DNA of 64,000 nucleotides from Macrostomum lignano. Lineage: Eukaryota. The notes below the pieces were generated by a model. The model was not told the origin of the DNA and did not search any database. It saw only the letters and a list, made by a program, of their open reading frames with translations. Location of the stretch: assembly GCA_002269645.1 (NCBI GenBank), contig NIVC01001512.1, positions 124,001-188,000 of the forward strand, given 5' to 3'. This document shows positions 3,701-31,162 of the stretch, one piece after another. Position 1 is the first letter of the stretch. Every line of letters begins with the position of its first letter. Made by a program: the position numbers and the translations under genes.

Positions 3701-4092
3701 GTAGTACTCTTATAGATTACTAAACCCCCCTTATAAATTATAATCGAGATCAGTCTTAAAAGAGTTCAAATATGATACTATAAGTACCACCATCGATTGG
3801 ACATAAAAACCAAGAGCAACTTAATTTCAAGAGGGGGTTCTTTCTTAGAGAAGCTTTGAAGACTAGCTGGCATTTTTACTCGTCTGAAAAATTTCTACAT
3901 TAAAAATTGATAGAATTACTTTCAGTAGCAGTAGAAGCGTTCGTAGATGATAATCTAAGCTTTTTTATAACCTAGAAATGCGGGTCTAATTATACATATA
4001 CTTACTCTTAGATGAGCTATTTTGTGTGTAATCTACTCTCCAATTTGAGTAGAAGGTTAAACAGATAACCTTTTGTGCTAATTTTACACAGT

Positions 4093-6404: not shown

Positions 6405-6824
6405 TCACGCCGTCGGTCTCGAAGACTGCCGATGCCTACGTCGGCTCTTGGCCATGTAGTGCAGAATCTGCCGAGCCAGACTTTTCTTAGTCTGACCCTC
6501 CGGCGGCTGGTCGAAGCCGCTGTCGTTGGACAGCATCCAGCTCACTTCCTCGTCGGGCAGGACGCTGGCCGGATTCGTGACGGCGCACTGGTCTGCACCG
6601 CCGCTCCCGACCCTGTCGTCGACTTCGCTGCCGTGTCCCAAATCTGTTGATGAAGTCAACGAAGACGATGCGCTGTCATCGATTCCCTCGTCTACGATTG
6701 TCGTCTCTGTTAAACCAGCCGAGTTTGATGCCATGAATATTCCGATGATCTTGGACGCAACGGCAGAGCTTGCAGATAGAGTTGTGCTTTCCGAATGACG
6801 ACTAGATAGAAAAACTTGTGACAT
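6405..6824 (-). CDS. Orphan Ser/acidic-rich small protein A1 (139 aa, or 109 aa from the ATG at 6734, MASNSAG...); paralogue of 8273-8704
   Basis: Shares SLTSSxDLGHGxEVxD, NPASxL, SNDSGF and a C-terminal basic amphipathic helix with the 8273-8704 ORF; GC-rich island in AT-rich flanks. Confidence 0.6.
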   Translation of the reverse strand: MSQVFLSSRHSESTTLSASSAVASKIIGIFMASNSAGLTETTIVDEGIDDSASSSLTSSTDLGHGSEVDDRVGSGGADQCAVTNPASVLPDEEVSWMLSNDSGFDQPPEGQTKKSLARQILHYMAKSRRRHRQSSRPTA

Positions 6825-7209
6825 CCATTTTGCTTCAATGTATGTATAAAACTCAGAACCAAATAGTAGGTAGTACTAAAATAGATTTCTGTATAACGCT
6901 CAATGGGGTGTGCATATGTCGTACATTACCCCCTGTTTGTAGCTCCACTCTGTATCTAGCGGCCAACCCGTTGGCTAACAACGGGTACGTACGAAATTCT
7001 TTTCAAGGTCAGACAGTCCACCCACGTATTGTATATAAACAAATTTAGTAAATTTACATTCAGTCAGCGCGTGACTAGACTATTTTTGAATTATGTACGA
7101 ATAACAATGGAGAGAAATGAAGAAAATGGGTCAGCTGACAGCTTCGTGGAATAACGAGCCCCGCTTATTATAAAAAAACATTAATTCCGGGGGAAAATCC
7201 GAAAGCAAG

Positions 7210-7406
7210 TACATTCTCTTATTTCATCTCCCCTCTCCTCTCCTCTCCTATTCGATCTCTCCTCTCATCTCATCTCATTCCTTTGCCTCTCCTTTCTCCT
7301 ATTTCTCTTCCTCCATTCTCTCTCCTCTCTCTCCCCTCCTCTGACCCGCAGTCATGCGCTGTGTTCTCCATCTGGCCCTGGAGGTGAAAAGTTTGCCGAC
7401 CTCCTG
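7210..7406 (-). mobile_element. Partial hAT (Charlie-like) MITE, same family as the 18678, 27067, 50312 and 63630 copies
   Basis: Minus-strand end CAGGAGGTCGGCAAAC followed by GGCCAGATGGAGAAC...GCATGACTGCGGG and a GA-rich tract, as in the 50312 copy. Confidence 0.65.
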
Positions 7407-7489
7407 GCTTTGGTAAACAGGGCAATAAAAATGTGCCGAGCAGAGAAAAAAGCAGAAACCATTAAATTTCCACGATCTTTTTCAGAAAT

Positions 7490-7697
7490 ATTTCAGGATG
7501 TGTTGCTGCCTTCCCTCTCTAATCGTCCGGCATGTACACTCTCTGTGCCGTGTTGGTTCGCCGTCATGGGAGTGAATCGCACAACAATCTCCCATTTAAT
7601 TTTCGCTTACAAGCCCAAAGTAACTGTGGCCTGCGCACGGATTCGAACCAGGGGTTTTGACGCGAGGGCCAGATCGCTTACCGTTGAAGCTACTCCC
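7490..7697 (-). mobile_element. tRNA-derived SINE
   Basis: A box TAGCTTCAACGG and B box GGTTCGAATCC 43 nt apart; no acceptor stem; body motif GTGTACATGCC..ACGAT shared with the 56325-56650 and ~63900 copies. Confidence 0.65.
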
Positions 7698-8272
7698 TCA
7701 ATATTGCCAGTAAATTAGACATATTCTATTCTGGCTACTAGCAGTAGTCGTTGAGGCAGTTGTCTTCCTATACGAGAAACGTGTATATTTAGAACAATAG
7801 ACTACCTTCAGGAATATGAATGTAACACTAGTAAAAATCATGTGATCATGGCAGCCAGTGATGCCACTAGTGATGAAGCACGGCCTCCAGGTTTAGAGAG
7901 CATAATGATCCCGTTTGATAACTCAAGAAAATATCGATTTTGAATCTACCTACCTGTCTTCTATTTAATCAATAAAAAACGTATAGTCGAAACGTAAAAC
8001 CAATATAGTGAGAGGTGTACTCAGAAACATCAAAAAGTCGCCATCACAGAAGATTCCGTCTGTGGTCGCCACTTTTGAGAGTGCAGGTGAAGTCTCTCAA
8101 TCTTTGCGAGTGACGCAACTCAGTTTTCTCGTATTTTTTTCAGAATAGTCCAAGAGAAACTGCTCACTACGGCGCATAGAGTGGCGACTTTTAAATGTTG
8201 CTGACATGAGTACATGCAGTATAACTTATAGTCTCAGTTCGTATAAAACTAGATATGATGGACATTCGGAAA

Positions 8273-8704
8273 TCAATTAGGATTCAAAGCTCGCTGTTGC
8301 CGCCGGTCTCTGGCTATGTAGCGCACAACCTGATGGCCAAGATTTTTATTACGCTGCATCTCCTGTTGACCTGTAGAAGCTGCTTCAGAGTAGACAGCAG
8401 CGGCGGCGGCGGCGGCGGCGGCAGCGACGAGGGCCTCGTTATTTAGGCTGCCAAATCCGCTGTCGTTTGACTGCATCAAGCTTATTATAGATGAAGATTC
8501 AGACAGGATGCTGGCAGGGTTGATGACGCGATTTGCGTCGGTTCTTGAATCGTCTTCTACTTCGTTGCCGTGTCCTAGATCTGCCGATGAAGTCAAAGAT
8601 GTTGAGCCTCCTTCATCTTCTGAACCATTTCGATCGACGCCATTAGCGACGTTGGGATCGATATTGGTGCTTGATGGACGAAATTCATTAAGTTGAGAAG
8701 CCAC
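8273..8704 (-). CDS. Orphan Ser/acidic-rich small protein A2 (~143 aa ORF; begins at GTG, so the true start or an upstream exon is uncertain)
   Basis: Paralogue of 6405-6824 with conserved motifs in frame; contains DSGFGS and a poly-Ala tract. Confidence 0.5.
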   Translation of the reverse strand: MASQLNEFRPSSTNIDPNVANGVDRNGSEDEGGSTSLTSSADLGHGNEVEDDSRTDANRVINPASILSESSSIISLMQSNDSGFGSLNNEALVAAAAAAAAAAVYSEAASTGQQEMQRNKNLGHQVVRYIARDRRQQRALNPN

Positions 8705-9626
8705 CGTTAGTTTTTTTAGTTATTTAAACTAATATATCTTCAGGAGAAACGGCGATGGAGAAGAATGATGCAATAACGTCGGATACAGAGACACAAACCA
8801 GCTCTCCAGATAAGAATATACACTCCTGTATTCTTGCTGTTTCCAAACCGCGAAGTCTTTTCTCTGTTTATTTCTTTTCTGCCTTTCTTTTATTGCCATC
8901 ATCTTGTTAGAATTCAGGATAGTAGCTCGTACGAGTTATTTGTACTGAGAATTGCTGGCAATTTAATAGAGTTAAATGGTTGTTTCAAACGAACAGGAGT
9001 AGCAAAACTTTGCGTTTGTGTGTTACGAGCTCGTAACGTCCATTAAAAAAAGCTATTTCGAGTTCAAAAGATTTGTGCACGTTAAGACATATCGTAAGTA
9101 CAGTGTACACCATAACTTTCGAACAAGATCCGAGTATATCAGACAGTTAGCTCTTAATTTAGCCAGTTTTCAATCGATTAGCAATGCGCTTTTGCTCTCC
9201 TTGCGCTTTGCGCTTTTGGAAATTTCGCTCGATTACCCCTTAAAATTTTAGACGTTTTTTTAATTTATCGATATGCAACATCGTGTCAAGTACAGGCAGC
9301 TTGAAAGTTGAAGTAAATTAGCAGATTGAATAATAGCTATACAAGACTTCTAAAAAATCAATACGCCACTTTTGCACTTTGTAATTCGGGAAAGAATGTG
9401 AAGAAATAGTAGAATTACCTATAAACCAGGAGCTTCAGGCTCAGAATGGAACGAATTTTTCAAAACAACTACACGGTCAATTTCAGTCCTATTTGTGGGA
9501 TTTGCTCCGGTCTACCTCTATTCCAGGTATCAAGAAATGCCACATGGCCAGATCCACAGTGTCGATTGAACTAGCAATACATGTATAATAGTGTATGTTG
9601 TATTACTTGAATACGGTGCATCAACT

Positions 9627-9716
9627 GAATTTTAGGGAATGTGCAATTTAGGGAATGTGCAATTTAGGGAATGTGCAAGTTTGGGGAAATTGTGATTTAG
9701 GGAATGTGAAATTTAG
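9627..9716. repeat. 16-bp tandem repeat (TTTAGGGAATGTGCAA), ~5 copies
   Basis: Directly visible. Confidence 0.8.
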
Positions 9717-10515
9717 CTCCCTCACTTTCAAAAAACATCCGAAAATGCACGGCTGGAAATAAAACTCAGAGACTTTAAAGACATGCAAATCCATACACTT
9801 CTATAATAGAGAATCAGTATGAGAGATGCAGTTTCCCAAATACGCTGCTGTTAATAAAAAGATACAGCGATAGTTTGCTAAACCGACCCGGGCAAAATAA
9901 GCCCCCAAATTGAGAAGAGAAGAGGTAAAGTAAAAACAAGCCGAGAGAGAGACAGGGTAACCGGGAGGCGGGCCGCCAGCCGGGCAGGCAAAACGCGACA
10001 GAAAAGCAACTCCAAAACGCTGACAGGGGAGTAGCGAGAAAGGAAGCGAAGGAGGGAAAGGGAGTCAGAAAACGCGGAGGGGGGTTTACGCTAGCTCGTA
10101 CCAGGTTTAGAGAGGAATCGTTTTCAACGCTTAATCTTCATATTCTTCTAAGTAGGCAATGAAATAAACCCCGTGATACTATAGTCCTCAAGTTAGTGAC
10201 TTGGGAGTAGGGGGGGGGGTCGCAGGACAGACTTGATCTGGCTGCCTCTCTAACCCCAAAAGCATTAAAACAGCAACGGCCATGGAGGGGAATGGGGAAC
10301 GCTGGTGTCATTACGGCTAACAGGTTGGATGCTCGCACACATGTAAGTCGGCATTTATTGGCAGCTCTTCCAGCTCCCTCTGTTCTCTCTCTTCTGCTTG
10401 GTCAGCGGAAAGGGAGAGAATGGGAAAGAAAAGACGGAAGGATAGAAAAATATTTATATATACCTGAAATAGCTATAGCTGAAATAGAAGCCAATCGGAC
10501 AGAATACAAATAAAA

Positions 10516-10710
10516 ATGGCTGGTTACTTCGCTGCGGGTCCCAGCGTCGAAGTCGCGGACCTGAGCGCCACGCTGCCTGCTCTGGAGGTGGAACTTGAAC
10601 AACCCGGACCAGATCAGCGTCGGGCGCTGTTGGCTGGCAGCCACGGCGACATCGAGCTGGCAGGTTCACCTGAAGGAGAAGGCGGCAGCCATGGCCAGAG
10701 TGGCGCCTAA
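10516..10710 (+). CDS. Orphan micro-protein B1 (64 aa, MAGYFAAGPSVEVADLSATLPALE...)
   Basis: AAATAAAAATGG start context; aligns with 14272-14559 with frame-preserving indels and a homologous stop (GGCGCCTAA). Confidence 0.55.
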   Translation: MAGYFAAGPSVEVADLSATLPALEVELEQPGPDQRRALLAGSHGDIELAGSPEGEGGSHGQSGA

Positions 10711-12468
10711 AAACTTTACGAGCATATAAACTCCATGAAAAAAGCATTTGATTTGTTTAATCAGGTATTAGTAGTAATAGTAAAGGAATGTTATGTACAT
10801 GCGCTCTCAATTCTCACGCTTCGTGTGAGGATTTGATTTTGTTGTTCTTGGACTGAACCTGGCCGGCTTGCCTCTCAATTTACTACAGCTTTCAATTAAA
10901 CAAATATTATTCATTCAAAGCTTTGATTAAGGTATGTACAATAAGGCCCGAAGCGGAAGCCATATCACCCGAGTGACTATAGCTTTAAGGAACAAAAAGC
11001 TCCTTGATTGAGACATGCTAGATAGTACTTCGTATAGCACACGGTTCCGGCGATACGCTCGCACCAGTACGCTCGTACTCCAGTTTCTATGTGCAAGTTT
11101 AGTGTCAAAAATCATATCACATGATCCTGTCAGATGCCACAGCTTAGAAATTGAAATAATGGGCCCGTATGGGGCAGCGGCAGGGATCATCTATCTAGAT
11201 TTTCCGCTGTGTATAGAGTATGGCACTGCTCGTGTCTTGTCTAGTTCTTGTGGCAGGGGCAGAGAGGCGGCGGGTGCAAAGCGGCATATTTCTCTTCTAA
11301 CTAGACTTAAAGCGACTAAAATTCCCACGGAGTCTCCACCCGCCCTCCCCACCCGTAAAAATCCCCACCCGCCCTCTCTCCTAGTAAGTGTCTGCAATCT
11401 GCATGAAGTGCATGAGCATGCCCGAGAGTCCAAGTGAAAATGAGGCGGGTGGAGCTGGGTCGGTGCATGGCTGGGTCGGAGCATGGCAGTATGAGCGGGG
11501 TAGGAAAAGCGGGGAAATTAAGCATATTGTAGTGATCCGCTATTTAGTGGTAGGCGTCGCACCTTGTCAGCAGTTACCCTTGCCCTCGCCCTCGCCCTGG
11601 GTTGCTGTCTGCCGCTCTGGTCAGCTTCCCGCCTCCCTCCTTGTGGCTGTCTGTTGCTGCTCCCTTCCCTCGTTTTGCCCGTTTTGCCCCTTCGTTTCCC
11701 AGCCCTCAGCTTCTCTGCTGTGGGCTGTCGCTGTTTCGTCAGTGTCGGTTTCCTCTGCCATGTGAGCTAGTCACATGACAGATCTCTCGTTCTTGGAGTC
11801 CTAAAGTGCAGTAAACACGTTTACTGCACTCGCTGATCCTGTTTACTGGGAGAGTCACGTGCCTTCGGTCCCTCCCTTCTCTAATGAGAGAGTGATTCAT
11901 GTTGCTAAATTTAGCAACTGAGTCACAGCCGCGTGTACTCTGCCCGGAGACCCCAAGTGACGTCAGTTCTAAAAATAGAACGAGTCACGAGGTCTTGTGC
12001 AATGGGACAGAGGTGAATCCCGCGCTATAAATAGGACCCCTCTCCCCTTGTTTCCGTCAAGGAGGTTCTGCGATTCTGACTATTTGTCTTCGGAGTCTTC
12101 TTCTTGTCAAGTTTTCCAGACTTCGTTCAGTTGCCCATTAAGCTATCTGTATTTGGCCTGACTAAACTTAGACGTCCAAGCCTAAAGAAGGCTAGCACTG
12201 CCTTCCCAACTACCCCCTGAGCCCGGCGGGATCTGCTGAACAGGACGCCTTGTTCATCAATCTGCAAATCTGCACGCTGTGCTGAGCTCGTTGACTTGTT
12301 TATTTCGTTCCAACGGGAGGCTCACCTCATCGAAGGCAGAGACCTGAAGGAACTGGTGGCAGCACTACCTACGCTACTGAGAGAGTTAAGAAGGCTTCCA
12401 GCAGAAGAGGCCCGAGACTTAGGTAAACTTAAGGGCCTAAACCGGGAAGCGAACAGCAAGTACTTCAC

Positions 12469-12488
12469 TGGTAGCAGCGGTGGGATTC
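12469..12488 (+). other. PBS-like sequence complementary to the tRNA-Leu 3' end, located inside the LTR (copies at 13353-13372 and, degenerate, at 12543-12563)
   Basis: TGGTAGCAGCGGTGGGATTC versus the complement of the eukaryotic tRNA-Leu end GAATCCCACCGCTGCCACCA (1 mismatch). Confidence 0.7.
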
Positions 12489-12555
12489 AAAGACCTACCA
12501 GGCCACGTCGAGACAACCCCGAGAAACAGCGTAATACTTCATTGGTGAAGCAGCG

Positions 12556-13204
12556 GTGAGATCCGACTACGACTACACCCAAGCCAACCGCTCTTTCGAG
12601 AACGACTTCGGCCAGCGACTACGACGAGTTCAACATGTTCAACGAGCGAAACGAGAGCCGGTGCAGCAGCCGGCTGGATCAGCACATCAGCAGTTCGAGG
12701 CCTGCGGCAGCAGATGCCGCCACAGCAGCAGCAGCGATCAACGACTTTGGTCAGCAACCGACGCCGAGGCGAGGTGCCAGAAGCGACGCGTCCGACGACC
12801 CGCCAGACGAGCTTCTGCATGGCCTGGACAACATCGGCCGGAACATCACGCACCAGGACGTGAGGACCATGATGCCAGCTCTGCAGCTCTGCAGCAGATG
12901 GAGCGGCCCGTGAGTAAACAAGTTAAGATCGTTAAATTAACTCCAAGCCAGGACATCAATGTCTGGCTTGCCGCGTTCGAGCAACGTTGCGAGATGGAGC
13001 ACATCGTCGACCCGTTCGAGATGAAGCGACACCTCATCGCGAGTCTTGATTTGGCTACGGCGTATCCTTCCTTGCTTGGTATGAATCTTCCACGTTTCGC
13101 CAGCTTCGAGGAGCTCAAACAACGTCTAATAGAGCGATTTGCCCGTCATGGTGGTGCTGATGAGTATCGAGAACTGTTGCGACGCCTTCAACAAGGCAAG
13201 AAAG
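12556..13204 (+). pseudogene. gag: Truncated retrotransposon gag (capsid) fragment
   Basis: INVWLAAFEQRC...ASFEELKQRLIERF...YRELLRRLQQGK is typical of Ty3/Gypsy Retrotrans_gag; it breaks off into LTR sequence and there is no pol. Confidence 0.7.
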
Positions 13205-14271
13205 ATCACCTCATCGAAGGCAGAGACCTGAAGGAATTGGTGGCAGCACTACCTACGCTACTGAAAGAGTTAAGAAGGCTTCCAGCAGAAGAGGCACGAG
13301 ACTTGGGTAAACTTAAGGGCCTAAGCCGGGAAGCGAACAGCAAGTACTTCACTGGTGGCAGCAGTGGGATTCAAAGACCTACCAGGCCACCTCGAGACAA
13401 CCCCGAAAACAGCGTAATACTTAATTATCGTACAATAACTGTTAGCTACGTTGTCCCCACACACACGACACACTCCTCATCTGCCTGTCTCGCCTTTCGT
13501 CCCTAACCTTTTCAAGATTTCTCTTCGGACAATTAATTAAAAATTAAAAAATACAACATGGTACTAAAATGTTTTTGTAATCGGCAATATTCTGAAGCAG
13601 AGGTCTTTTCAGCGTTTATTATTTGTGGTATTTGAGCACAATGAGGCAATCACTTTTAAGGCAACATCATCAACGTATTACTGTTAATTCAACCCGAACC
13701 GAATTTTTAACTACGAATCAATTTCGAAATAAACAGCGCATAACTTGGCAAGTTGGTATAAGATAGTTCAAGTCTATTGACAGTCAGCGTTGAGGGCTTC
13801 ACCTATATACACATGTAGAGCATATGTATATTTTGAAATGATTGAATATTGTATTACATGTTCATCACAATTCATTTTGTTTTCATTCGCTTTTTGGACA
13901 TGAGGGGTCGGGAACATTTTTTATCTTAAGTCAGTTAGGGCAGCGGTGGATCCAGGGGGAGGGGAGTTGGTGGGGGGGACATGATCTGATTGCCGCAACA
14001 GCAGCTGAGGAGAATGGGGGGACGCTGTTGTGCATTGCGGCTAACAGGTTGGATCCTCGCACTCGCATGCACGTGTACAGTCTGCGTTTATTGGCAGCTC
14101 TTTCAGCTTCCTCTGTTTTCTCTCCCCGCTTGGTCAGCCAAAAGGGAGAAAAGGCCGAGGGATAGAAAATTATTTCTATCTCCGAAGAAGACAGCTGAAA
14201 CTTGCTATTTGAGAATTCGTCTTGAGCTAGCTAGCTAAAATAGAAGCCAATCGGACAGAATAGAAATAAAA

Positions 14272-14559
14272 ATGGCTGATTACTTCGCTGCGGGTCCCAG
14301 CGTCGAAGTCGCGGACCTGAGCGCCACGCTGCCTGCACTGGAGCTGCAGACTGCTCAAGCCCCATCTGCAGATCAGCGTCGGGCGGTGCTGGCTCGAACC
14401 CGATCAAGCAGCGAGGGCGACGTCGAGCTGGCAGGTTCTCCGCGAGAGTTCGTCGGAAGCCACGGCGCAGACTCGAATGGACGAGGAGGAGAAGGCGGCA
14501 GCCATGGCCAGCAGCCTCGGGGAAGCAGGCGGCGTCTGCAGTCGTGGAATGGCGCCTAA
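14272..14559 (+). CDS. Orphan micro-protein B2 (95 aa, MADYFAAGPSVEVADLSATLPALE...)
   Basis: Paralogue of 10516-10710; 23 of the first 24 residues are identical; in-frame insertions. Confidence 0.55.
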   Translation: MADYFAAGPSVEVADLSATLPALELQTAQAPSADQRRAVLARTRSSSEGDVELAGSPREFVGSHGADSNGRGGEGGSHGQQPRGSRRRLQSWNGA

Positions 14560-15049
14560 AATCTTTTGTAAACTCCACGGCTAAGCAATGAAGACGCATT
14601 TGAGAAGTGACTTGTATAGTTCTTCCAACATTATTCATTCCATGCCTTGGTTATATACGAGTATATGCACAAGTAATTGTTTTGCGCCCACGAGGCCGGA
14701 AGCGGATGCCATATATCACCCGAGTGACTGAGAGTACAAGATTTGCTAGCCAAAATAAGCTTTGCTGGAAAATTCAGCAGGAAAGACAACAAAAATGATT
14801 CCTGATGCCATTGTATACAACTAATAGTACCCATAAAACGTTTCGTCTCCTTTATCCCCACTTGGCCCCCATTTGGAGCATGCAGGCTTACGCCTCGGCC
14901 GAGAAACACTACGTTCTCAGTCATTTTGACGGCACAGATAAATGAATAAACAAAAGATATTTATACTTATCAAACTGTTGCTCGCTAAATTTCGTAAGCA
15001 AAATTCTCACTAGCAAATTCCAATTTGGTAAGTTTTATTAAGTGCTAGG

Positions 15050-15374
15050 CAGTGGCGTAGCCAGGGGGGGGGTTGGGCGCGGCGGGTACCAAAAAACACG
15101 AGGCAATTGAGTGCCTGTGGCGCTAAAATGAGTGCCTGCGGAGCTAAAATGAGTGCCTGCGGCGCTAAAATGAGTGCCTGCGGCGCCAAAATGAGTGCCT
15201 GCGGCGCCAAAATGAGTGCCTGCGGCGCCAAAATGAGTGCCTGCGGCGCCAAAATGAGTGCCTGCGGCGCCAAAATGAGTGCCTGCGGCGCCAAAAGTGG
15301 CAATGGCATAAGGCATGGCCAGCCAGGCCAACACGCCCCCCCCCTCCCAATTGAAATTCCTGGCTACGCCACTG
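15050..15374. mobile_element. hAT MITE with an internal 21-bp tandem repeat (AAAATGAGTGCCTGCGGCGCC x ~9)
   Basis: Perfect 16-bp TIR CAGTGGCGTAGCCAGG / CCTGGCTACGCCACTG; 8-bp TSD GTGCTAGG / GTGCTCGG (7/8). Confidence 0.9.
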
Positions 15375-16422
15375 GTGCTCGGCTAGCAGATTACAGCTTG
15401 TAAATTTCTCGCTGGCAAATTCAAGCAATTTCCACTCCGACTATAGAACCGCGGCTCTCCTTTTCTATTTTTATCAACAGACAAAAAACTTCAATTCAAA
15501 GCACAAACAGACTGACCATCATGTTTGGTGCTGGCATGCCCCATGCACGCAGAGAGGAAGAGAGTACATTAATTTATCGATTAGACCCCAGCAACAGCAA
15601 ATGTGGAAAGCTGGGCCGGCAACTCAACCCCTCTGTCTGCAATCTATGCAAGGAGAAGCCAAAGTGAAGTGGAGGCGGGCGGTGACTGAGAGCATGACTG
15701 CACTTGCCAGAAATTAAGCTTATCGTATAACTGTTAGCTACCTTCCCCCCACACAATACGTGCAAACTCTCCATCCCTCTCTCTCTCTCTCTGTCTCGCC
15801 TCCCGCAGCCTTTTCAAGATCTCTCAAGACAATTAAGCAGTGTTAAAAAAACAATATGGCACTAAATTGTTTTTTAATCGATATTCTGAAGCAAGGCTCT
15901 TGTCCGTGCTTATAATTTGTGGTATTTGAGCACAATGAGGCAAATCAACATTGACAAGGACTTAAAGGCGTTATAAATGCAGTACTGTTCGAATTCATTT
16001 CGAACCGATTTTTTAAAACTACGAATCAAATTCAAGACATCTAATAACTTGGTAGTTGGCAGGCATACGATAGGTACGATCTTATTTTCGAGTTTATTGA
16101 CGACAAGTCAGCGTTGAGGGCTTCTTTTCCTATATTTACATGTACAGTAAATATGTATATATGAACATTAGAATTCATTTTGTTTTAATTCTCTTTTTGG
16201 CCAAATATACCACCTGCCACCGACTTAATCGCTGTTTAATTTAATTTGAGCAGGTAGCTGGAAGAATCGACAAGTACATGTAGTTAGTAGAAGTCAAAAT
16301 CAAGGATGCCGAAAGTGTTCATGATACCCAAAAAAAGTATATAAGGATTTTAAATACTCGCAACGCTGAGGTAAGGGCGCATGTCCACTCCATAACACAG
16401 GAGAGATTGGAGCAGGTGTCGG

Positions 16423-18674
16423 TGCTGGACCACCGGCGAGGTCCCCGCCGCATGGCGACGTGCTGAGATCATTGCTATTCTCAAAAAAGAGAAAGATGCG
16501 AGCGCTACCAGCTCCTACAGACCCATCTCTCTGCTCAGCTGCGTAGGAAAACTGATGGAGCGTATAGTCACGAACCGGTTGTATTTCTGGCTTGAGACCC
16601 GCAGCCTGCTAAACCGCAATCAGGCAGGTTTCCGTAAATGACACTCTACCATGGACCAACTGACGCGCATCACCCAAGCGATTTTCGATGCTTTCGAGCA
16701 GAAGAAACCGGAGCGCGCCATCCTTATCCTGCTGGACTTCGCCAAAGCCTACGACCGGGTGTGGCGCCCGGCCTTATACGCGAAAATGGCACGGCTTGGC
16801 GTCCCTAAGCATGTTATTCACTTCATCAAAAACCTCCTCTGCGACCTTCGCGCCCGTGTGCGCTGGGGGGACGCGACCTCCAACTGGAGAGTCTTCTCCA
16901 ACGGTCTGCCTCAGGGGTCGGTCATCGCACCTTTGCTATGGCTTGTTTACGTCCATGAAATGACGACGGCATCGACGGGAGCGTCCACCGTTCACTTTTC
17001 GCCGATGACACGGCACTTCTGGCGACGGGCCGGTCAATGAACGCCTGCGCTGCGAAGATCCAACCCGCGCTGGACCGTGTCGTTACGTGGACTAACAAAT
17101 GGAAGGTGACGCTGAGCCACTCTAAATGCGTCTTCACCACCTTCACGCTGAACCCCAGTGAATGCGGCGGAAAGGTCCTTCCGACACTGCGCATTGAGGG
17201 TCAGGAGCTAACATACGATCCGTCACCTACGTTCCTCGGTCTAAGCCTTGACGATCAATTGACTTTTGCTAACCATGTCGAGGCCGTGCGCCAAAAGATG
17301 GCCAATAGGCGGCGCTGCCTGCAAACTCTCGCTGGCAAGGTCTATGGCGCTCATCGGACCACGCCACAAACAGCTGCTCAGCAACGAATTTATCCGCATC
17401 ATGAGCCTGCCCGACGATGACCCAGCGCGCGAGTTGCTGTCGATCGCGCCACCGCCGCGCCTCCGCAGCAGGGCCCATGAAGCCTGGAAGCGCGACGTCG
17501 GCCCTGACCAACCTGTCGATATTCTGAGATGGGACGAAGACATTACCCTGAGCAACAAACCTTGTTTCCGCCGCGTTGGACAGTGGCTGTGCAAACTCGC
17601 TGGTTTCCACCTGGAGGACCTCATGCGCCCTGTCGAGCCCGCGCTCCCGCCATGGCACTGGCTGGATAAGCAGGTGACCATCGCGGTCGACCTGGTCGCC
17701 GCCACGCGCTGGAGTGACCCTCCCGACTTCCGCCGGGAGATTGCTGAGAGGACGCTGGACCTCCTTCATCCGGCGGACGTGCTTATCTGGACCGATGGAT
17801 CCAACCGGCCGGATGGCACCGCGTCTTGAGGAGGAGCTGTTATCACCTCGGACCCTCTGGGTATCCGGAAAGATGTCTGTGTGCCGGCCGGCCGCTGGAA
17901 CAGTAGCACCAGTGCGGAACTCGTTGCGATCGAAGCGGCCCTTGCCCGCCTGGCTGAGCTCCTCCGTAGTGGCGGCAGCCCGGCCATTACTGCCAGGCTG
18001 TGCACGGATTCCCGTGCCGGCCTCCAAACGATTCTGCGCGGCCTGACCGTCGCGGCGGACGATGTCACCCGACGCGTCTGGGCTAATATCGCTGCCCTGC
18101 CGAGTGGCTGCAAAATTCACCTGCAATGGGTGCCGGGTCACACTAACCTCCCTGGGAACGAAGCGGCTGATGAGATGGCCGGGAGAGCTACCGAGGCTCA
18201 GCAACAGCCGAATTCCGTCACCCCTATCGCCGCTAGGACTGCCATCAATCATGTTCTCCGAGTTTGGCGAAAAACGCGAGACCACATGCACCCGTATCCG
18301 AGCCCGACGCTTGGCCACGACGATCTCCCGAGATGGGGCCAGGTCACCCTTTGCCAGCTGAGAACGCGCAAATCCCCGCTCACGCGCGACACACTCCACC
18401 GATTCGGCCTCACCACTGACGACCGATGCATTACCTGTGGAGAGTCGGACTCGGTCGAGCATCTGCTCCTAACCTGCCCAGGCTACCACCAGGCTCGCAT
18501 CCGCACCTGGGGTGGCATCAGCGTTGATTGGAATACCGTGCTGGGGGGCGAGGGCAGCCTCCTCTGTGATTACCTGCGCAGGGTGGGCCGCCAAGAACCG
18601 CCTATCGACGATCCAGGTGGCAGAGCGGCCCCGACCCGGCCTCCCGCGGGCGGCCGCAGGTCGGAGGGAAGAGA
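16423..18674 (+). mobile_element. 5'-truncated non-LTR retrotransposon (I-superfamily-like: RT + RNase H + CCHC), with frameshifts and a stop
   Basis: YRPISLLS, LDFAKAYDRV, GLPQGSVIAP, LFADDT (shifted frame), RNase H IWTDGS / AELVAI / TDS / WVPGH..GNEAAD, C-terminal CITC...EHLLLTC; 13-bp TSD GAGCAGGTGTCGG at 16410-16422 and 18675-18687. Confidence 0.95.
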
Positions 18675-18677
18675 GAG

Positions 18678-18977
18678 CAGGTGTCGGGAATATTTTCTAC
18701 CTTGAAAAGCCAGTTAGGGACTCTATCAGATAGCTGTGTGTCTGATAGAAGAGTATGAGTAAAAGAGAGAAGCGAAGAACGGCAGGAGAGGATAGGAAAG
18801 GAAAGGAAAGGAGAGGGGAGGAGAGGAGTGGAAAAGAGAGGAGAGGAGATCCGCTGAGAAGAGACACAAACCCTGAGCGGCCCGGATTGCCATTTCGAAG
18901 TGTCAAAGGACCTGAGGGCCGGATAGAGAGGCTTCGAGGACCGCATCTGACCCGCGAAGCGGAGTTTGACGACCCTG
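18678..18977 (+). mobile_element. hAT (Charlie-like) MITE whose left end is the LINE target site
   Basis: CAGGTGTCGGGAA left end, GA-rich interior, AGACACAAACCCTGAGCGG..GGCCGGATAGAGAGGCTT family core, right end GTTTGACGACCCTG. Confidence 0.7.
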
Positions 18978-19598
18978 GAAAAATGCAAGCAGTCAAAAAC
19001 CTTCACTGGATCTTATAACAAAAATAAAAAAATAAATGGCCAGCATCAGCAAACTATTTTTAGGGCACATATTTTTACGTTCTGTTTAGCTTATTGTTTA
19101 CTAGACAAGTAGACACTTTCCAGTATATCCTCCCTATGGATATGGAACTAGAATCTTACGCCGCTATTGCTTGTTCGCTTCGAAAGAATAAGCTAATCGA
19201 GCGGGCATTTGAAGAGACGCTTAATCAATATTAGTTATAGTATCTAGATCCTGATGGATCGTCATTTTTGTAATAGAAAAAAACAATTTAGCCTTTAATT
19301 GTACTTTTTAGTACTAGGTAACAATATTTATAGTGCACTACCTTCAATGTACAATGCGATTTATTTTTAGCAACACGCTTAGACTTTACTACGAGCCGTA
19401 TTCTGAACTAAAACTAGTGGTTGTGGTCGCCTTCTATCTCTTATCCAATAACAAGCTTATTCAACTTTTATTGGATAGTGTTCTCATTCTCACTCTAAAC
19501 AGTATATAAAGCCATACCTAAATATCGTACACTTGGCATAGAACGCTAAACGTTTTACAAAGAAAGAAGATTTACAATTGAGTAAGATTAAACTTAAA

Positions 19599-22500
19599 AT
19601 GGCCGAGGGCGGTGGAGAAGAGGATTATTTCCCTGGAAGAGTTAGCACCTCACAGCAGGCCTCGCCGGCACAGTCCATAACCTCTCTGTCCCGTTCAGTG
19701 CAAGATATTGTTACCTACAGCCTCGAGACGGGCGAATCCGCAATACCAGAGCCCATTGCTCAAAGCTCTGCACCGGGCATCGAGCACCAGATGGAGGAGA
19801 CTGACCATTCGTTAGCTCGGAGCTCTGCACCGGGCATCGAGCACCAAATGGAGGAGACTGACCATTCGTTAGCTCGGAGCTCTGCACCGGGCATCGAGCA
19901 CCAAATGGAGGAGACTGACCATTCGTTAGCTCGGAGCTCTGCACCGGGCATCGAGCACCAAATGGAGGAGACTGACCATTCGTTAGCTCGGAGCTCTGCA
20001 CCGGGCATCGAGCACCAAATGGAGGAGACTGACCATTCGTTAGCTCGGAGCTCTGCACCGAGCATCGAGCACCAAATGGAGGAGACTGACCATTCGTTAG
20101 CTCGGAGCTCTGCACCGAGCATTGAGCACCAAATGGAGGAGACTGACCATTCGTTAGCTCGGAGCTCTGCACCGAGCATCGAGCACCAAATGGAGGAGAC
20201 TGACCATTCTTTAGCTCGGAGCTCTGCACCGGGCATCGAGCACCAAATGGAGGAGACTGACCATTCGTTAGCTCGGAGCTCTGCACCGGGCATCGAGCAC
20301 CAAATGGAGGAGACTGACCATTCGTTAGCTCGGAGTTCTGCACCGGGCATCGAGCACCAAATGGAGGAGACTGACCATTCGTTAGCTCGGAGCTCTGCAC
20401 CGGGCATCGAGCACCAAATGGAGGAGACTGACCATTCGTTAGCTCGGAGCTCTGCACCGAGCATCGAGCACCAAATGGAGGAGACTGACCATTCGTTAGC
20501 TCGGAGCTCTGCACCGGGCATCGAGCACCAAATGGAGGAGACTGACCATTCGTTAGCTCGGAGCTCTGCACCGAGCATCGAGCACCAAATGGAGGAGACT
20601 GACCATTCTTTAGCTCGGAGCTCTGCACCGGGCATCGAGCACCAAATGGAGGAGACTGACCATTCGTTAGCTCGGAGCTCTGCACCGGGCATCGAGCACC
20701 AAATGGAGGAGACTGACCATTCGTTAGCTCGGAGTTCTGCACCGGGCATCGAGCACCAAATGGAGGAGACTGACCATTCGTTAGCTCGGAGCTCTGCACC
20801 GGGCATCGAGCACCAAATGGAGGAGACTGACCATTCGTTAGCTCGGAGCTCTGCACCGAGCATCGAGCACCAAATGGAGGAGACTGACCATTCGTTAGCT
20901 CGGAGCTCTGCACCGGGCATCGAGCACCAAATGGAGGAGACTGACCATTCGTTAGCTCGGAGCTCTGCACCGGGCATCGAGCACCAAATGGAGGAGACTG
21001 ACCATTCGTTAGCTCGGAGCTCTGCACCGGGCATCGAGCACCAGATGGAGGAGACTGACCATTCGTTAGCTCGGAGCTCTGCACCGGGCATCGAGCACCA
21101 AATGGAGGAGACTGACCATTCGTTAGCTCGGAGTTCTGCACCGGGCATCGAGCACCAAATGGAGGAGACTGACCATTCGTTAGCTCGGAGCTCTGCACCG
21201 GGCATCGAGCACCAAATGGAGGAGACTGACCATTCTTTAGCTCGGAGCTCTGCACCGGGCATCGAGCACCAAATGAAGGAGACTGACCATTCGTTAGCTC
21301 GGAGCTCTGCACCGGGCATCGAGCACCAAATGGAGGAGACTGACCATTCTTTAGCTCGGAGCTCTGCACCGGGCATCGAGCACCAAATGGAGGAGACTGA
21401 CCATTCGTTAGCTCGGAGTTCTGCACCGGGCATCGAGCACCAAATGGAGGAGACTGACCATTCGTTAGCTCGGAGCTCTGCACCGGGCATCGAGCACCAA
21501 ATGGAGGAGACTGACCATTCTTTAGCTCGGAGCTCTGCACCGGGCATCGAGCACCAAATGGAGGAGACTGACCATTCGTTAGCTCGGAGTTCTGCACCTG
21601 GCATCGAGCACCAAATGGAGGAGACTGACCATTCGTTAGCTCGGAGCTCTGCACCGGGCATCGAGCACCAAATGGAGGAGACTGACCATTCGTTAGCTCG
21701 GAGCTCTGCACCGGGCATCGAGCACCAAATGGAGGAGACTGACCATTCGTTAGCTCGGAGCTCTGCACCGGGCATCGAGCACCAAATGGAGGAGACTGAC
21801 CATTCGTTAGCTCGGAGCTCTGCACCGGGCATCGAGCACCAAATGGAGGAGACTGACCATTCGTTAGCTCGGAGTTCTGCACCGGGCATCGAGCACCAAA
21901 TGGAGGAGACTGACCATTCGTTAGCTCGGAGCTCTGCACCGGGCATCGAGCACCAAATGGAGGAGACTGACCATTCTTTAGCTCGGAGCTCTGCACCGGG
22001 CATCGAGCACCAAATGGAGGAGACTGACCATTCTTTAGCTCGGAGTTCTGCACCGGGCATCGAGCACCAAATGGAGGAGACTGACCATTCTTTAGCTCGG
22101 AGCTCTGCACCGGGCATCGAGCACCAAATGGAGGAGACTGACCATTCGTTAGCTCGGAGTTCTGCACCGGGCATCGAGCACCAGATGGAGGAGGCTGACC
22201 ATTTGTCAGCTCGGAGTTCTGCACCGAGCATCGAACTTGAGGTGGAAGAGCAGCCAGAACATTTGGCAACTCAGAGTTCTGAAGCCAGCATGGAACTTAA
22301 TCAAGAAGCGGCTTCAGTTTCGCAAGATCCGACCACTACAGTTTCAAGAACGGAGTGCCAGGCAGAGGAGGCTGCGCCTGAGTTGGTCGATGTACCAAAC
22401 CAGAGTGGAGATGTTTCAGCAATCGAAGACGATTGCTCGCGCCCAGAGATCAGTTGCATCATACTTACGAACGAAATGCCAAGCAGCTCATTAACGTCTG

Positions 22501-23775
22501 TAGATTCTGGCCATCCAGTTGTCCAACCCAATCACTCTTTCGGAGAATCCAGCGTGCCGAATGAGGAACAACTGAAAATAACTGAAAAAGATGAACAGCC
22601 GCCTGCTTCACGGAAGGGTGCTGACGAAACTTCCCGCAACATCCCCGAAGTAGCTGGGATTAAGCTGAGATTGGAGCAGTTGCAAAAACCGATCCATTCC
22701 AACCAACACTCAGAGTTGGTTGTCGCTCGGGTTGAACGCTTTGAACAGCGTTCGTTGCCGCACCCAGAGAAGAAGCAGCAGCTGAGTTCAAGTCTAACGC
22801 AGATTGCAACACGGTAAAAAATTGCTGTTAATTTTTTAGGGGTTCTCTCGAATCGAATAATTTCACTTTAGCTATCAAAATAATTTATCATATAACTTGT
22901 CTTGTATTGTAGACAAGACGGAATGGAACAAACTGACCAGAATACAGCGACAAAAAGCGCTCAGAGCAGCTCCGTATCGTCGACTAGCACCGCCACTGCA
23001 TCATCTGCTTCGGCCGAGGCTTTGCAATTGCCCGACTGTCCTGATACGCACGACCTGGTACCAGACGCGTTGTTTGACGAGCCAAGTGACCAACAGCTGA
23101 ACCGCGTGACACCAACCTGGTGAGTCTGAGATAGGGTAATTGTTTCACAAGCACTAACCATGTATTACATGCTCGTAAATTTACAAGTCTATTCCGGAAT
23201 GGGGTTGAAAACCATAAATTTCATAAAGCCCCAGTCATTCTAACTTAATTTCACAAAACGAAAAGCATTCTATTTGCTATAGCAGCGTTCTATTAGTTTG
23301 ATCATGCTAGTCGACTCTCTGGAAGCCTTAAGGTTTATGAAAATGCATGGATGCTAGTCGGTTAGGCCTAGACGTTGCGAAAATGAAGCTTTGTGACGAA
23401 AGCACCTGTTTGACCACCTGAACTGATAAAGACTCTCAAACTGTTTGTAGCGCTGGCGGTGGCTCCGGCCTACCGCTAGCTCAGGAAGACTCGCCTGACG
23501 GCTTGGCCAACGTCATAGATGAGCCAGCGGAAGACGAAGCCCAGCGGCAGTCGTTGCTGCGCGGTTACGACAGTCTGCCTTCGGTCATGAACGCAGAAGC
23601 AGTCAACTGGCAGCTCAGCAGACGCGGTCATCAAAGGCAGTTTCAACTACAGCATGACGATCAATATGAAGAGCATCAACGGCCAAGACCAATAGCGACT
23701 CGAATCTGGCTTTGGCTGCGGCCTCTGTGCAACTCATGCAGCTGCCTTGGGCAACGAATCAACGTGGAAGATTAG
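19599..23775 (+). CDS. Orphan 3-exon gene C1, ~1248 aa disordered acidic protein with a 19-aa tandem repeat; join(19599..22813,22913..23119,23451..23775)
   Basis: TTAAAATGG start; two GT-AG phase-2 introns that restore a single frame (total 3747 nt); N-terminus and C-terminal LRPLCNSCSC homologous to gene C2. Confidence 0.8.
19763..22230 (+). repeat. Coding 57-bp tandem repeat, ~43 copies (SSAPGIEHQMEETDHSLAR)
   Basis: Near-identical units, no indels, frame maintained throughout. Confidence 0.95.
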
Positions 23776-26909: not shown

Positions 26910-27066
26910 ATTATGTCTTTATCTTCTAGAGCGATTAGATTAGGTAAAATACTTTATCCTTTGCAGTAAGGCTTTTAAAATTCAAAACTTTTTCCAAGAT
27001 TTCCGATTTAAACTTATCACGAGAAGCACTCACTCACTATAAACGTTTCAAATATACTTAAAACAA

Positions 27067-28020
27067 GCAGTGAACTTTCTACCACCCCACCACATGGTAC
27101 TTTGGACAGGTCCTTTTATCGTAAGGGAGGGCCGATAGAAACTCCAGCGTATGCCTGCGGGCCAGAGGAGAGGAGAGGAAAGCAGAAGAGATGAGAGAGA
27201 GAGGAGAGCTTAGAAGAGATAAACCTTGAGCGGGCCGGATTGTGAAGTTTGACAGGACCACAGGGCGGGATAGAGAGGCTTCGCGGGACGCATGGGAGGG
27301 CTGATTAAGCGCGCCAGGAATAAGCGCGCACGTGTATTTTTTTGCACACGTCGGAATAAGCGCGCAGGGAACAAGCGCGCACAGAAAAATGTTGGAATAA
27401 GCGCGCTGCGATATTCCTCGATACAGGAATGAGCGCGAAAAGTTTTGTCAAAATACTGTAATAAGCGCGCATCCATATTCCTAGGCACAGGAAAGAGCGC
27501 GCAACGTTTTTTAAAAGTCCTGGAATAAGCGCGCACAGATTTTCAACAGAACTAAGATTAAAGTCGAATTTAAACTATGTATTTAAGACGAAGCAAGGTT
27601 ACAAAGTTAAAATTGCTAAAAGCTAAAAGCTTAGCTGAAAGTTGAAACTGCAGCTGAGAAGTTCGCTAAAAATCATAAAAGTTAGTTAAAATCATCATTT
27701 GCGCGCTTAATCCCGTCAGTACAAAAGCAGCTGTGCGCTCATTCCGAAAGCGGGTAAAATTTTGGCGCGCTTGTTCCAAGTCATGGGAAAACTCGTGCGC
27801 GCTTTTTCCTGTATCGATCAAAAATGCTGCGCGCTTATTCCGGTCTGTGAAAAGTTAACTGCGCGCTTATTCAGGTTTTGGTCCGTTCTCCGGGATTACG
27901 GAATTACATGGTTATTCCGAACCATGTAAAATATGTGCGAAAATGCGCGCTTGTTCCTGGTGCGCTTAATCTAGCTACCCGGACGCATGTGGCCCGCGGA
28001 CCGGAGTTTGCCGACCACTG
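27067..28020 (+). mobile_element. hAT (Charlie-like) MITE interrupted by a nested Mutator-like element
   Basis: Family core before 27294 resumes at 27981 and ends GTTTGCCGACCACTG; left end degenerate. Confidence 0.7.
27295..27980. mobile_element. Mutator-like foldback MITE with GGAATAAGCGCGCA subterminal repeats
   Basis: 9-bp TSD GGACGCATG (27286-27294, 27981-27989); imperfect long TIRs built from the repeated motif. Confidence 0.85.
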
Positions 28021-29453
28021 TGACGTACGAAGTATAAGGGATCTAATTCGGTCTTACAGTCGTCATTGCTTTGCTAATCTGAACTGTCAGTCTCTGACAG
28101 AGTGCGCTTTAATTCTGAATTGAAAATTTTCAGGACATACCATTTGAAGCTGTAGTAAAATTGACTTTTAAAAATCAAACTTTGTCGACCTACGAACTTA
28201 TGGCTGGATATTTTCGAATTAGCTTGTAAACGTGTCTTTTTCATCAGCATGCCAACCCAACTTGTCTTCATCAACTTCAGTCTTGAGTGTCCACTAGCCC
28301 GGGCGGGCAGAACATGTAGTTACTCGTACAACTACAACCTGCTAATTGGGTGGTTCTCTTCCTCTGCACTTCCCTGTAAACCATGCACAAACTGAGTCGC
28401 ATTTAAAGACCATATAGAAATAGACCGCAAATCTTGGTGCCTACCTAGACAAGTTTTGTGACAAAAAACTTTGTAGAAAAGTCTCTCCCTCACCCACCCC
28501 ATTTCTATCGATTCGCGGTATAAAGCGGTCATCTGAACCAATTTGAGTCCTTAAGCAAGAGAAGACACTTATAACTCTGCATTGCTTCAGTTCACCCAGC
28601 TGTAAAATGGTTGCCAGCATTAGCTGCGGTAATTGAGGATGTGTGTGGCGACCCTCCAGTCCTTGGACTGAACAGCCGTACGCAGCCTTCAGATGCTGTC
28701 GGTTGCACATCTGCCCATTAGGGCAGGTGTAGTCAATTATTATTAATTATTACTATTGGACGCATTCATTTCTATGAATCTTTTATACAATTTTCTCGGC
28801 TTTATTTTCAATGTGTCGTGGCGTTTTTAAACTAAATATAATAAAAGTATGCTTGTTAATTAGAGAATAATAAAATAATAACAAAAAGTCTGACTATTCA
28901 GTCAGGAAAAGTAATAGAATGCATCCTTTAGTCGCTTTTAAAATGCAGAAGTCCACAGATTTGTGACAATATGCATGCGCACTGTGATAGCTAGCTAGAT
29001 ATATAGCAGATTCAACCACTAGAGAGAAAGGCAGACATGCATTAGACAGGCCAATAAAAGCTGCATGTCGCATTAGGGCAGAGTGGGGTGTTACACATAC
29101 TGTACACACGTACATAGAAGATAGAATTCACAGAGAGACAAAGGTGCAGAGAAAGCTCGATTTTTCAAACCCCAACAGCCAACCAACAAACAGACTTTCA
29201 GACCCGACTCCCCAGCTGGCCATTGGGTTTTGCATAGCTGCTATAAAGGGTGGAGAATTCAAAGCAACTGTTTCTCAGAGTTGAGTCACGTAAAAATCTC
29301 CAAGCCTTAAGAGCATAGGGACACATAATTACTCTTTTGATAAATGAAAAGGCCCAAAAGAATTTGTGATCCTGAAAATACACAGTATACAAAACTCCTA
29401 TATACTGTAAAAAAACTACCAAGAAAAGAAGCAGAAGCGAGTTCAACACCAGT

Positions 29454-31162
29454 ATGGCAGAAGGAAGCGACCATAGTGACGAATTTCCACTCAGAGAAGG
29501 CCAATCGCAACAAAACACGCCGTCGTCGTCTACAAACTCGCTACCGCGCTCGGCTCAGGACTTGCGTGGAATCGAGTTGGAGACCAGCGACTCATCCTTG
29601 GGCGACGGCTCGAGCCAGCAGCGACCGGCGAGTCTTCCTGAGCTGACTGAGCCGCACAGGGAGTTGCTCTTCGCATCGCAGCCGAGTCCTGACTGTGCAG
29701 CATCGGACGACGCATCTAGCGAAGACCAAGCCGAGGCATCGGAGTCGCCCACTTCGGAGAATGGCTCTGAAGTCTCTGCTGTTACCGAAAGTTCAGTAGC
29801 AAGTGTCGCCACCGACGCTTATGATCAAGAGTCGTCTAGCGAGCTAGTCCAAGACAACGTCCTAGGTAGAGTTACGGGCGCCGCTGCCACCGCGTCCGTA
29901 TGTAGGCATGAGTCGGCTCCAGCTCGCTACAATCTGTTCCAACGTAAACAAGACAGCACAGCGGCTGGAACAGGGCAGGCGGCTCCGACGCCAGTCGTAC
30001 GAAGTCCCTCACCGCCGATGGGAAGTGGCGTCCAAACCGATGCAATGGAAGGTACGACAGCCGCAATCGGCACGGATGTCAACAACGACGCTGCGGCAAC
30101 CAGTCTGCCAAAAGGGGACGACAATGACGAGGAGGCCCCGGCAAATGAAGACAACGCCGCAGCTGCGATTCCAGAGGCTCAACAGGCAGCGGCGGCTAAC
30201 GAGAATGCCGAGCTTCTTGCCGCTGCCACAGCTGTTTTTGCGAAGCCTGACCAGTCGGGTGAAAAAACAACTGGACACGAGCATGCAGCTAACTTGTGCG
30301 CGAGAAGTCCTGAAGTCACAGCTAATTTTGTGACTGGAATTGAGCTCAGAGGACAACCGCCGCTACTGCAACGTCCAGACGCCAGCTTGCGAAATGGACA
30401 CAGCGAGGGGAGCATTGACACAAGCAGAAAAACGCAAGAAAAGCAACGCAGCTGTACCCTGGGCCGGCACTCCTCGTCACCGGCTCAGAGCAGTCAGGAA
30501 GAGAAACGGCTGCAACAGCTGCACCAGCAACAACAGAAGCCAGCAGCTGAGCGAAGGTAAATCAACTGAACAGTAACTTTCTTAAATTGATCAATTAAAG
30601 CCACATGCATGAATGTAAATTTTCAAGGCGATTTCCGCACCCTTTAGAGACGGTTTGACTCTGGATGCGCAACGCCTGCCGCCGGCTCCCGAAGTTGATG
30701 AGCCAGAGGATTTGCAGCAGCAACAGCAAACTGAACAAGAACAAGCTCATACATCAGAGGCGTAAGTATAAAATGATAAAAATTCGAAACCTCAAATTTG
30801 TCAAAGCCTTAAAAGTCTATTTTTTTCTTCTATCAACGTCATGCAGTAATCAGGAAGCTCCGGAGCTGCCGCAGCTGCAGCCGGCGCCGGTTGAGACTCC
30901 ATCCATGCCGGCCACCGAATACGCAGCAGCGACGTCGGATCCGCCGCCGCCGGCCATCCCAAGGTTGGACTCAAGAAGCGACGGTATCGAGCAAGAATTC
31001 ATCAGCCCACAGGAGATTCAGCCTAGGGCTGAAGACAGACGGGACAGCATCCGCAACGCGAACAGAGGTCGGCGGCGACTGCGACACCGACTGCTCGCCT
31101 CTCTGCGCTACCTGTGCCAGTCGTGCACGTGCACCGGGAGTAGGAGGCCTGCTGCTGACTAG
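29454..31162 (+). CDS. Orphan 3-exon gene C2, ~510 aa disordered Ser/Ala/Glu-rich protein; join(29454..30556,30648..30761,30847..31162)
   Basis: Two phase-2 GT-AG introns in the same arrangement as C1 (total 1533 nt, in frame); MAEG..(D/E)F..SQQ..S..SL.RS.QD...LET N-terminus and C-terminal LRYLCQSCTC. Confidence 0.8.

Follow-up and report, generated by a model that had tools for sequence, protein, structure and literature searches.

Do the six open reading frames (ORFs) that form three similar pairs between positions 6405 and 31162 of a 64,000-nucleotide stretch of Macrostomum lignano DNA (contig NIVC01001512.1, positions 124,001 to 188,000 of the forward strand; hereafter the window) derive from one gene that was expanded locally, or do they represent separate inventions? 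The original prediction, made from the letters alone, had read them as a single, rapidly evolving, lineage-specific family of acidic disordered proteins with a common C-terminal helix. Our analysis favours, with a probability of roughly 0.7, two independent M. lignano orphan families, A (A1 and A2) and C (C1 and C2), each an old tandem pair, along with a third pair of ORFs, B1 and B2, that is probably not a gene, and with retrotransposon debris in between (Table 1). The locus is an ordinary orphan gene cluster, for which the prediction was right about the pairs and over-reached on the family.

A 21.7-kb piece of NIVC01001512.1 matches positions 19454-41162 of the window exactly. M. lignano is a neopolyploid (PMC10733133), and several near-identical or diverged sister contigs therefore exist, four of which (L001 to L004) served as natural replicates. 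The gene order A1-A2-B-C1 recurs on L001 and L003, B2'-C2' is found on L002 (NIVC01001189.1, a homeologous contig) and C2 is present at 99.6% identity on L004. Three of the six ORFs (A1, C1 and C2) are already deposited as hypothetical proteins on NIVC01001512.1 and a fourth, A2, in part on a sister contig, so that the description of all six as unrecognised applies to B, applies partly to A2 and does not apply to the other three.

Coding constraint within the pairs

The three paralogue pairs, each of which arose by local duplication, are borne out by BLASTP, with E values of 1e-12 to 1e-11 for A1/A2, 2e-25 for B1/B2 and, for C1/C2, 2e-7 at the N-terminus and 0.03 over the last 16 residues. Smith-Waterman scores compared with those of 300-1000 composition-preserving shuffles gave z=17.6 for A1/A2 and z=11.4 for C1/C2.

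The conserved core of A1 comprises 109 amino acids (aa) from the ATG at 6734 (MASNSAG...), the longest ORF beginning at 6824, and the gene call on NIVC01001512.1 is a 136-aa 5'-partial product. A1 is 99% identical to PAA59020.1 (Mlig032055g2). Its product is acidic, Ser-rich and predicted to be disordered, with a basic amphipathic C-terminal helix (LARQILHYMAKSRRRHRQ); AlphaFold2 places a helix at residues 86-104 (LARQILHYMAKSRRRHRQS; predicted local distance difference test score, pLDDT, 74-85) and leaves the remainder disordered. The conserved blocks of the family are SLTSSxDLGHGxEV[DE]D, NPAS, MxSNDSGF and the amphipathic helix at the C-terminus with the Arg run that comes after it, and the 11-mers that make up the tail motif in A are amphipathic, with a hydrophobic moment of 0.61-0.80. 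The ratio of nonsynonymous to synonymous change (omega) is 0.38 between A1 and A2. Between two A2 copies on different contigs it is 0.34 overall, with 0.15 in the C-terminal half (MQSNDSGF to the stop) and 0.54 in the N-terminal half, and the tail KNLGHQVVRYIARDRRQQR is unchanged between the contigs although the C-terminal half has accumulated 11 synonymous changes. Judged by these ratios (0.15-0.4), family A is coding and under purifying selection.

The start of A2 differs from that of A1: on every contig a GTG replaces the start ATG, stops lie just upstream and the first in-frame ATG is at 8476. Moreover, the A2 locus is broken by an insertion of ~1.5 kb on L001 (6440-7913) and L003 (8511-9991), the flanks of which look like GT...AG, so that older gene models splice the insertion out; this insertion carries a 21-bp satellite that is also found at 15108-15296 of the window. 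There is no gene call for A2 on NIVC01001512.1, and its C-terminal half is annotated on sister contigs as the 68-aa PAA57512.1, which starts with MQSNDSGF as does the 67-aa ORF at 8273-8476 that runs to the tail. Given the replaced start, the upstream stops and the insertion, this shorter product is most likely the A2 protein.

Family C is built differently. Counted from its ATG, our C1 model spans 1248 aa, in agreement with the gene called by NCBI (19560-23775; 1261 aa, 5'-partial), and the C2 model translates exactly to PAA67040.1 (P0003, 510 aa). In each gene two phase-2 introns divide the coding sequence into three exons, and the two genes share an internal block, V[AT]GI[KE]LR...LQ[KR]P...N.HSE, and a tail block, L[RC].LC.SC.C.G. 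Within C1, an array at 19764-22234 consists of 43 copies of a 57-bp unit (19 aa, SSAPGIEHQMEETDHSLAR) at 97-98% DNA identity, and 21 of the 31 differences from the unit consensus sit at third codon positions. The same array is partly present on L003, which ends ~17 units in, and the unit SSAPGIEHQMEETDHSLAR has no Pfam repeat match. With omega at 0.74-0.78 between C2 and its homeologue, family C is, on its substitution pattern, coding yet fast-evolving (omega ~0.75). The WormBase-derived C1 fragment P0008 (A0A1I8GB67) includes exon 2; it skips 13 nt (GTCATGAACGCAG) at window positions 23540-23552 and consequently ends in another frame, without the LCxSCxC tail that the NCBI model on NIVC01001512.1 keeps. 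The skip is either a mini-intron introduced by the predictor or a real deletion in that assembly.

The acidic character and the predicted disorder proposed for the whole set hold for A and C, which are Ser/Thr-rich and have net charges of -6 (A1), -7 (A2), -167 (C1) and -28 (C2, computed on a two-exon model). Their lineage specificity was also supported, as profile searches of libraries that may not include other Macrostomum proteomes returned M. lignano proteins only: two for A in a word-seeded HMMER search and, for C, P0003 and the fragment P0008 in an exhaustive HMMER search of 1.84 billion cluster representatives, which was chosen because the word-seeded C search was swamped by low-complexity candidates. 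Pfam yielded nothing for any of the six ORFs, and the A and C profiles had no match at E<=1 among PDB sequences, so that assignment to a known family was checked and not obtained. These searches support A and C as lineage-restricted (orphan) genes.

The substitution pattern of B is of another kind. B1 and B2 belong to a duplicated block (10285-10670 versus 14007-14441) with 75% DNA identity over ~400 bp, which includes 230 bp 5' of the ATG. Omega is 0.8-1.1 in the ORF frame, substitutions are spread evenly across codon positions, constraint is seen in none of the six frames, and B2 differs from its L002 copy B2' by 0 synonymous and 6 nonsynonymous changes. The same GC-rich DNA holds a longer antisense ORF (14231-14638) that overlaps B2. 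B has no gene call on any of four contigs, the exact ORFs are missing from a collection of 15 billion proteins, and a profile search of 5.8 billion proteins found no homologue. From these patterns, B1 and B2 are probably not protein-coding genes.

The alternative that survives best is that B1 and B2 are real, very young or fast-evolving coding genes that encode acidic, disordered micro-proteins of the de novo type. B2 of the window, B2' on L002 and the third copy (B3) on L003 all retain the ORF with its ATG position and stop, every indel within the ORF is a multiple of three, and the conserved 230 bp upstream could be a promoter. The in-frame indels and the kept stop tell against our reading, as they could fit a coding ORF that is young or under weak selection. 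Part of the indel signal is nevertheless selection bias, because the ORFs were chosen for being open, and the third copy is the sole unbiased test (p ~0.1). Set against omega near one, the 0/6 split between B2 and B2', the antisense ORF and the missing annotation, a coding B is doubtful, and its specific form as a de novo micro-protein gene slightly more so. The B block was also considered as an RNA gene and rejected, as there is no Rfam match across the whole window. On three contigs a C gene lies downstream of B, and we found no splice or annotation evidence for B as a first exon of C or as an upstream ORF.

Relationship between the pairs

No significant similarity was detected across pairs. 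In unmasked BLASTP searches with word size 2 the best cross-pair E values were 0.02 for B1-C2, which reflects low complexity, and 0.56-0.68 for A1-C1. All cross-pair shuffle z-scores stayed below 3, including those obtained with cheap long gaps that allowed collinear motifs to be chained, and tblastn of each protein against the window matched, at E<=1, only the protein itself and its own partner. Comparison by hhalign of profiles built from all available copies of A, B and C returned probabilities of 0.1% for A-C, 0.07% for B-C and 6.5% for A-B, the last from a Gly/Asp-rich stretch. The gene structures are likewise unlike: the A genes lie on the minus strand and consist of one exon, the C genes lie on the plus strand and have phase-2 introns between their three exons, and B consists of a short single ORF. 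The claim of one six-member family is not supported by these comparisons, and a lack of significant profile similarity between the pairs is a result that the original prediction itself had named as refuting it.

The case for a common family had been made partly on an alignable tail in A1, A2, C1 and C2. We located all four of the tail motifs, LARQILHYM (6453-6479, minus strand), LGHQVVRYI (8315-8341, minus), IATRIWLWL (23692-23718, plus) and LRHRLLASL (31079-31105, plus), and found that they do not align as proposed. Comparing only the tails of A and C by hhalign, the setting most favourable to a single family, gave a probability of 0.2% in a register unlike the proposed one. In A an amphipathic helix is followed by an Arg run, whereas the C tails begin with an Arg run, continue with a hydrophobic stretch and then reach L-C-x-S-C-x-C-x-G, in which C-x-S-C-x-C is invariant; the highest hydrophobic moment of the C tails lies in the Arg run and not in the proposed motif. 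B has no C-terminal helix tail of this type. Of the 318 stop-to-stop ORFs of the window, 14 (4.4%) match the pattern [LIVMFW]xx[QR][LIVMFW][LIVMFW]xx[LIVMFW] within their final 45 residues, so the presence of this pattern in a second family is unremarkable.

The predicted helix itself is weaker in C2 than in A1, as AlphaFold2 run on the last C2 exon proposes a helix at residues 61-82 with a pLDDT of only ~55. The tail stretch of the C2 homeologue P0005 (LRHGLLAPLCYLC) carries Gly, Pro (and Cys) replacements, and the Gly and Pro argue against a strictly conserved helix in C. If A and C are separate families, their tails would look alike through composition or convergence and not through inheritance. 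The start motif fared no better: MAGYF (10516), MADYF (14272) and MAEGGGEEDYF (19599) are all present, but the third B copy on L001/L003 begins with MENARLSSEV, without an MA.YF start, and C2 begins with MAEGSDHSDEF, so the start shared between pairs is trivial.

The separation of A from C has to be weighed against the possibility that all six ORFs arose from one ancestral gene through serial local duplication, followed by divergence so rapid that no more than short motifs are left (the tail helix, SSLTSxDxGH and MA..YF). Several observations speak for this and against our reading. A1 and C1, and no other of the proteins, share an exact SSSLTS followed by DxGH (the SSLTS motif lies at 6651-6665 on the minus strand and at 22485-22499 on the plus strand), with a shuffle p of 0.005 per comparison, four A-C comparisons being possible, and they also have a loosely collinear E-x-V-x-W-x-L-S block. 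The genes are adjacent, nearest neighbours are most alike and composition is similar. C evolves so fast that a loss of signal is plausible; furthermore, the profiles are very shallow (effective number of sequences, Neff, 1.2-1.6) and disordered proteins quickly lose detectable similarity, so that undetected homology between A and C is not proof of independent origins.

Against common descent stand the pairwise, profile and tail-only comparisons, the unlike exon structures and strands, the frequency of the tail pattern among arbitrary ORF tails and the missing coding signature of B. The resemblance of C1 to A1 at SSSLTS...DxGH is suggestive; the segment has a BLAST E value of 2.3-2.8, and C2 does not keep the block. 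MA.YF is not retained even within B. We therefore regard descent of all six from one gene as improbable, and assign the same low standing to a version in which A and C, perhaps with B, make up a single far-diverged, Macrostomum-specific disordered family that inherited only SSLTSxDxGH and the basic C-terminal helix. If that were true, B would represent an ORF between gene birth and decay, and the locus would offer a natural case, in compact form, of tandem orphan genes gaining or losing coding constraint.

Predicted properties of the A and C proteins

Within the reading of A and C as two orphan families, the constraint on A is confined to short linear blocks and the tail, as is typical for disordered adaptors or regulators that work through short motifs. 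Tentatively, and with the odds against the picture as a whole, A and C proteins would be flexible, probably phosphorylated scaffolds or adaptors that are tethered through their tails. In A, the basic amphipathic helix of the tail would be the part that binds a partner, a nucleic acid or an acidic membrane. In C, the hydrophobic stretch and S-acylation of the Cys triplet (LCxSCxC) would fix the tail to a membrane, and the long acidic body of C, hugely expanded in C1, would be displayed from the membrane surface. By eye, the N-termini of A and C (MAS... and MAEG...) do not resemble a signal peptide, and C has no transmembrane segment. These proposals have to be set against the literature, as Mlig032055, Mlig027183 and Mlig005752 do not occur in the M. 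lignano full texts and supplements that were searched for expression, and we found no localisation or modification data for these genes.

An Arg run with a hydrophobic stretch and a Cys triplet near the C-terminus of a cytosolic protein has the look of an S-acylated peripheral membrane anchor. SNAP-25 and GAP-43 are peripheral membrane proteins that are anchored by a basic or hydrophobic stretch together with a palmitoylated cysteine cluster, and the C tails may be analogous, with their Arg run, hydrophobic stretch and C-x-S-C-x-C, acylation being predicted only. Unlike SNAP-25 and GAP-43, with which they share no sequence homology, the C proteins have their cluster near the C-terminus of an acidic disordered protein. 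In its 43 units and its high negative charge, C1 is like other acidic tandem-repeat disordered proteins that result from recent repeat expansion.

The M.SNDSGF block, the best conserved of family A, resembles a beta-TrCP phosphodegron (ELM DEG_SCF_TRCP1_1), a predicted motif that we treat as a lead only. This phosphodegron, D-S-G-x-x-S, occurs in short-lived regulators, for example Cdc25A. DSGFGS of A2, on both contigs, fits D-S-G-x(2,3)-[ST] exactly as a pattern, and DSGFDQPP of A1 does not fit, as the second Ser/Thr is missing.

Another explanation of the cysteines, that C comprises RING-finger proteins in truncated or wrongly modelled form with C-x-S-C as the first zinc-binding pair, draws on the C-x2-C spacing and on the name 'RING-type domain-containing protein' given to the UniRef100 clusters with PAA67040.1 and PAA71002.1, and is highly improbable, as no C exon has a Pfam match at E<=1, no C3HC4 or C3H2C3 pattern, nor a second half, occurs in the six frames of the window, and a stop follows the tail directly in C1, C2 and two homeologues. 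Other names on older models of the locus ('Pecanex-like', 'GA15393') are visibly spurious, as is the chimeric P0007. An older 972-aa model is a chimera of antisense C1 repeats, antisense B, A2, A1 and a neighbouring EF-hand gene. Nothing in the sequence supports the names 'RING-type domain-containing', 'Pecanex-like' and 'GA15393'.

The closest parallel described so far is that in Macrostomum many genes, above all those linked to reproduction, evolve fast and are poorly detectable across species (Brand et al. 2020, PMC7336406). A and C are like such fast-evolving orphan genes in that they have no detectable homologue outside M. lignano, in the elevated omega of C and in their tandem duplication and repeat expansion, whereas family A, unlike fast-evolving reproduction-related genes, is clearly under purifying selection; a reproductive role for A or C would be a guess by analogy. 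No long-standing question is opened or settled by this locus. Its practical value is limited to corrected gene models, in which two orphan families are split from one doubtful ORF pair in a model flatworm and misleading labels ('RING-type', 'Pecanex-like' and the chimeric 972-aa model) are removed. The conserved short motifs and tails are open to RNA interference and transgenesis, both of which are established in M. lignano.

History and setting of the locus

The proportion of synonymous sites that differ (pS) is saturated for A1/A2 (0.60) and for C1/C2 (0.81) and only 0.15 for B1/B2. On these values the A and C duplications are old, separate events. The sister contigs L001 and L003 hold a single B, 2.7 kb upstream of C1, and no retrotransposon pieces. 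Together with the low pS of B, this single copy indicates that the B1-gag-B2-RT arrangement of the window arose recently, through duplication and insertions specific to this haplotype. Behind each copy of B lies an AT-rich block, X (13425-13831 and 15720-16160 in the window; 485-738 on L001; 71% identity), so that the duplicated unit comprises B and X.

Table 1. Coordinates of the genes, ORFs and mobile-element remnants in the window
Feature	Coordinates	Strand	Remarks
A1	6405-6824	-	single-exon gene
A2	8273-8704	-	paralogue of A1
B1	10516-10710	+	64-codon ORF within duplicated block 10285-10670
gag-like retrotransposon remnant	12296-13506	+	between B1 and B2; outside families A, B and C
B2	14272-14559	+	95-codon ORF, younger duplicate of B1
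degenerate non-LTR retrotransposon	16651-18705	+	between B2 and C1
C1 exon 1	19599-22813	+	contains 57-bp tandem array
C1 exon 2	22913-23119	+	AG before, GTGAGT after; both introns phase 2
C1 exon 3	23451-23775	+	bears tail ...RPRPIATRIWLWLRPLCNSCSCLGQRINVED
C2 exon 1	29454-30556	+	three-exon model = PAA67040.1
C2 exon 2	30648-30761	+	three-exon model = PAA67040.1
C2 exon 3	30847-31162	+	bears tail ...RGRRRLRHRLLASLRYLCQSCTCTGSRRPAAD

The gag-like remnant shows weak matches to Retrotrans_gag and DUF7041 and has an internal 220-bp duplication (12322-12543 versus 13206-13426, 95% identical), and the non-long-terminal-repeat (non-LTR) element carries RVT_1, RNase_H and zf-RVT in shifted frames; both are missing from the L001/L003 haplotype. 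On L002, ~6 kb of unmatched sequence (3864-9840) lies between B2' and C2', and a C1 copy is absent there; C1 may have been lost, the window may show a gain specific to its haplotype, or the assembly may have collapsed.

Repeats were mapped by self-BLAST with masking, since the C1 array swamped the unmasked search. A dispersed repeat of ~200 bp with a GA-rich core was found at 7263-7404 (minus strand), 18784-18975, 27166-27293, 50313-50477 and 63690-63878. A1, C1 and C2 are each preceded by a copy that has the same orientation relative to the gene, and we considered the repeat as a shared promoter; as it also occurs at two unrelated sites, it is most likely a common interspersed element and not a shared promoter. 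In the 150 bp that precede each of the six starts, nothing beyond a generic A-rich context was seen.

Downstream of C2, three blocks of a 52-53-bp satellite, the unit of which has 8-bp inverted ends (CCCCCCAC...GTGGGGGG), extend over 32881-47279. The blocks are separated by a 2.5-kb spacer (36536-39034 versus 42404-44899, 99.4% identity), a third copy of which lies at 47.3-49.4 kb (88%). L004 joins window position 32772 directly to 49412, so that the whole 16.6-kb satellite block is absent or collapsed there. Coding-looking ORFs at 1.7-2.3 kb, 55.2-56.0 kb and 59.7-60.6 kb are satellite read-through only. On the minus strand, an ORF at 53211-54038 occupies the position where L004 has a gene with a SRAP (PF02586) match, and conventional neighbour ORFs at 58068-62368 resemble, by eye, a nuclear RNA export factor in their leucine-rich repeats and TAP-C-like end.

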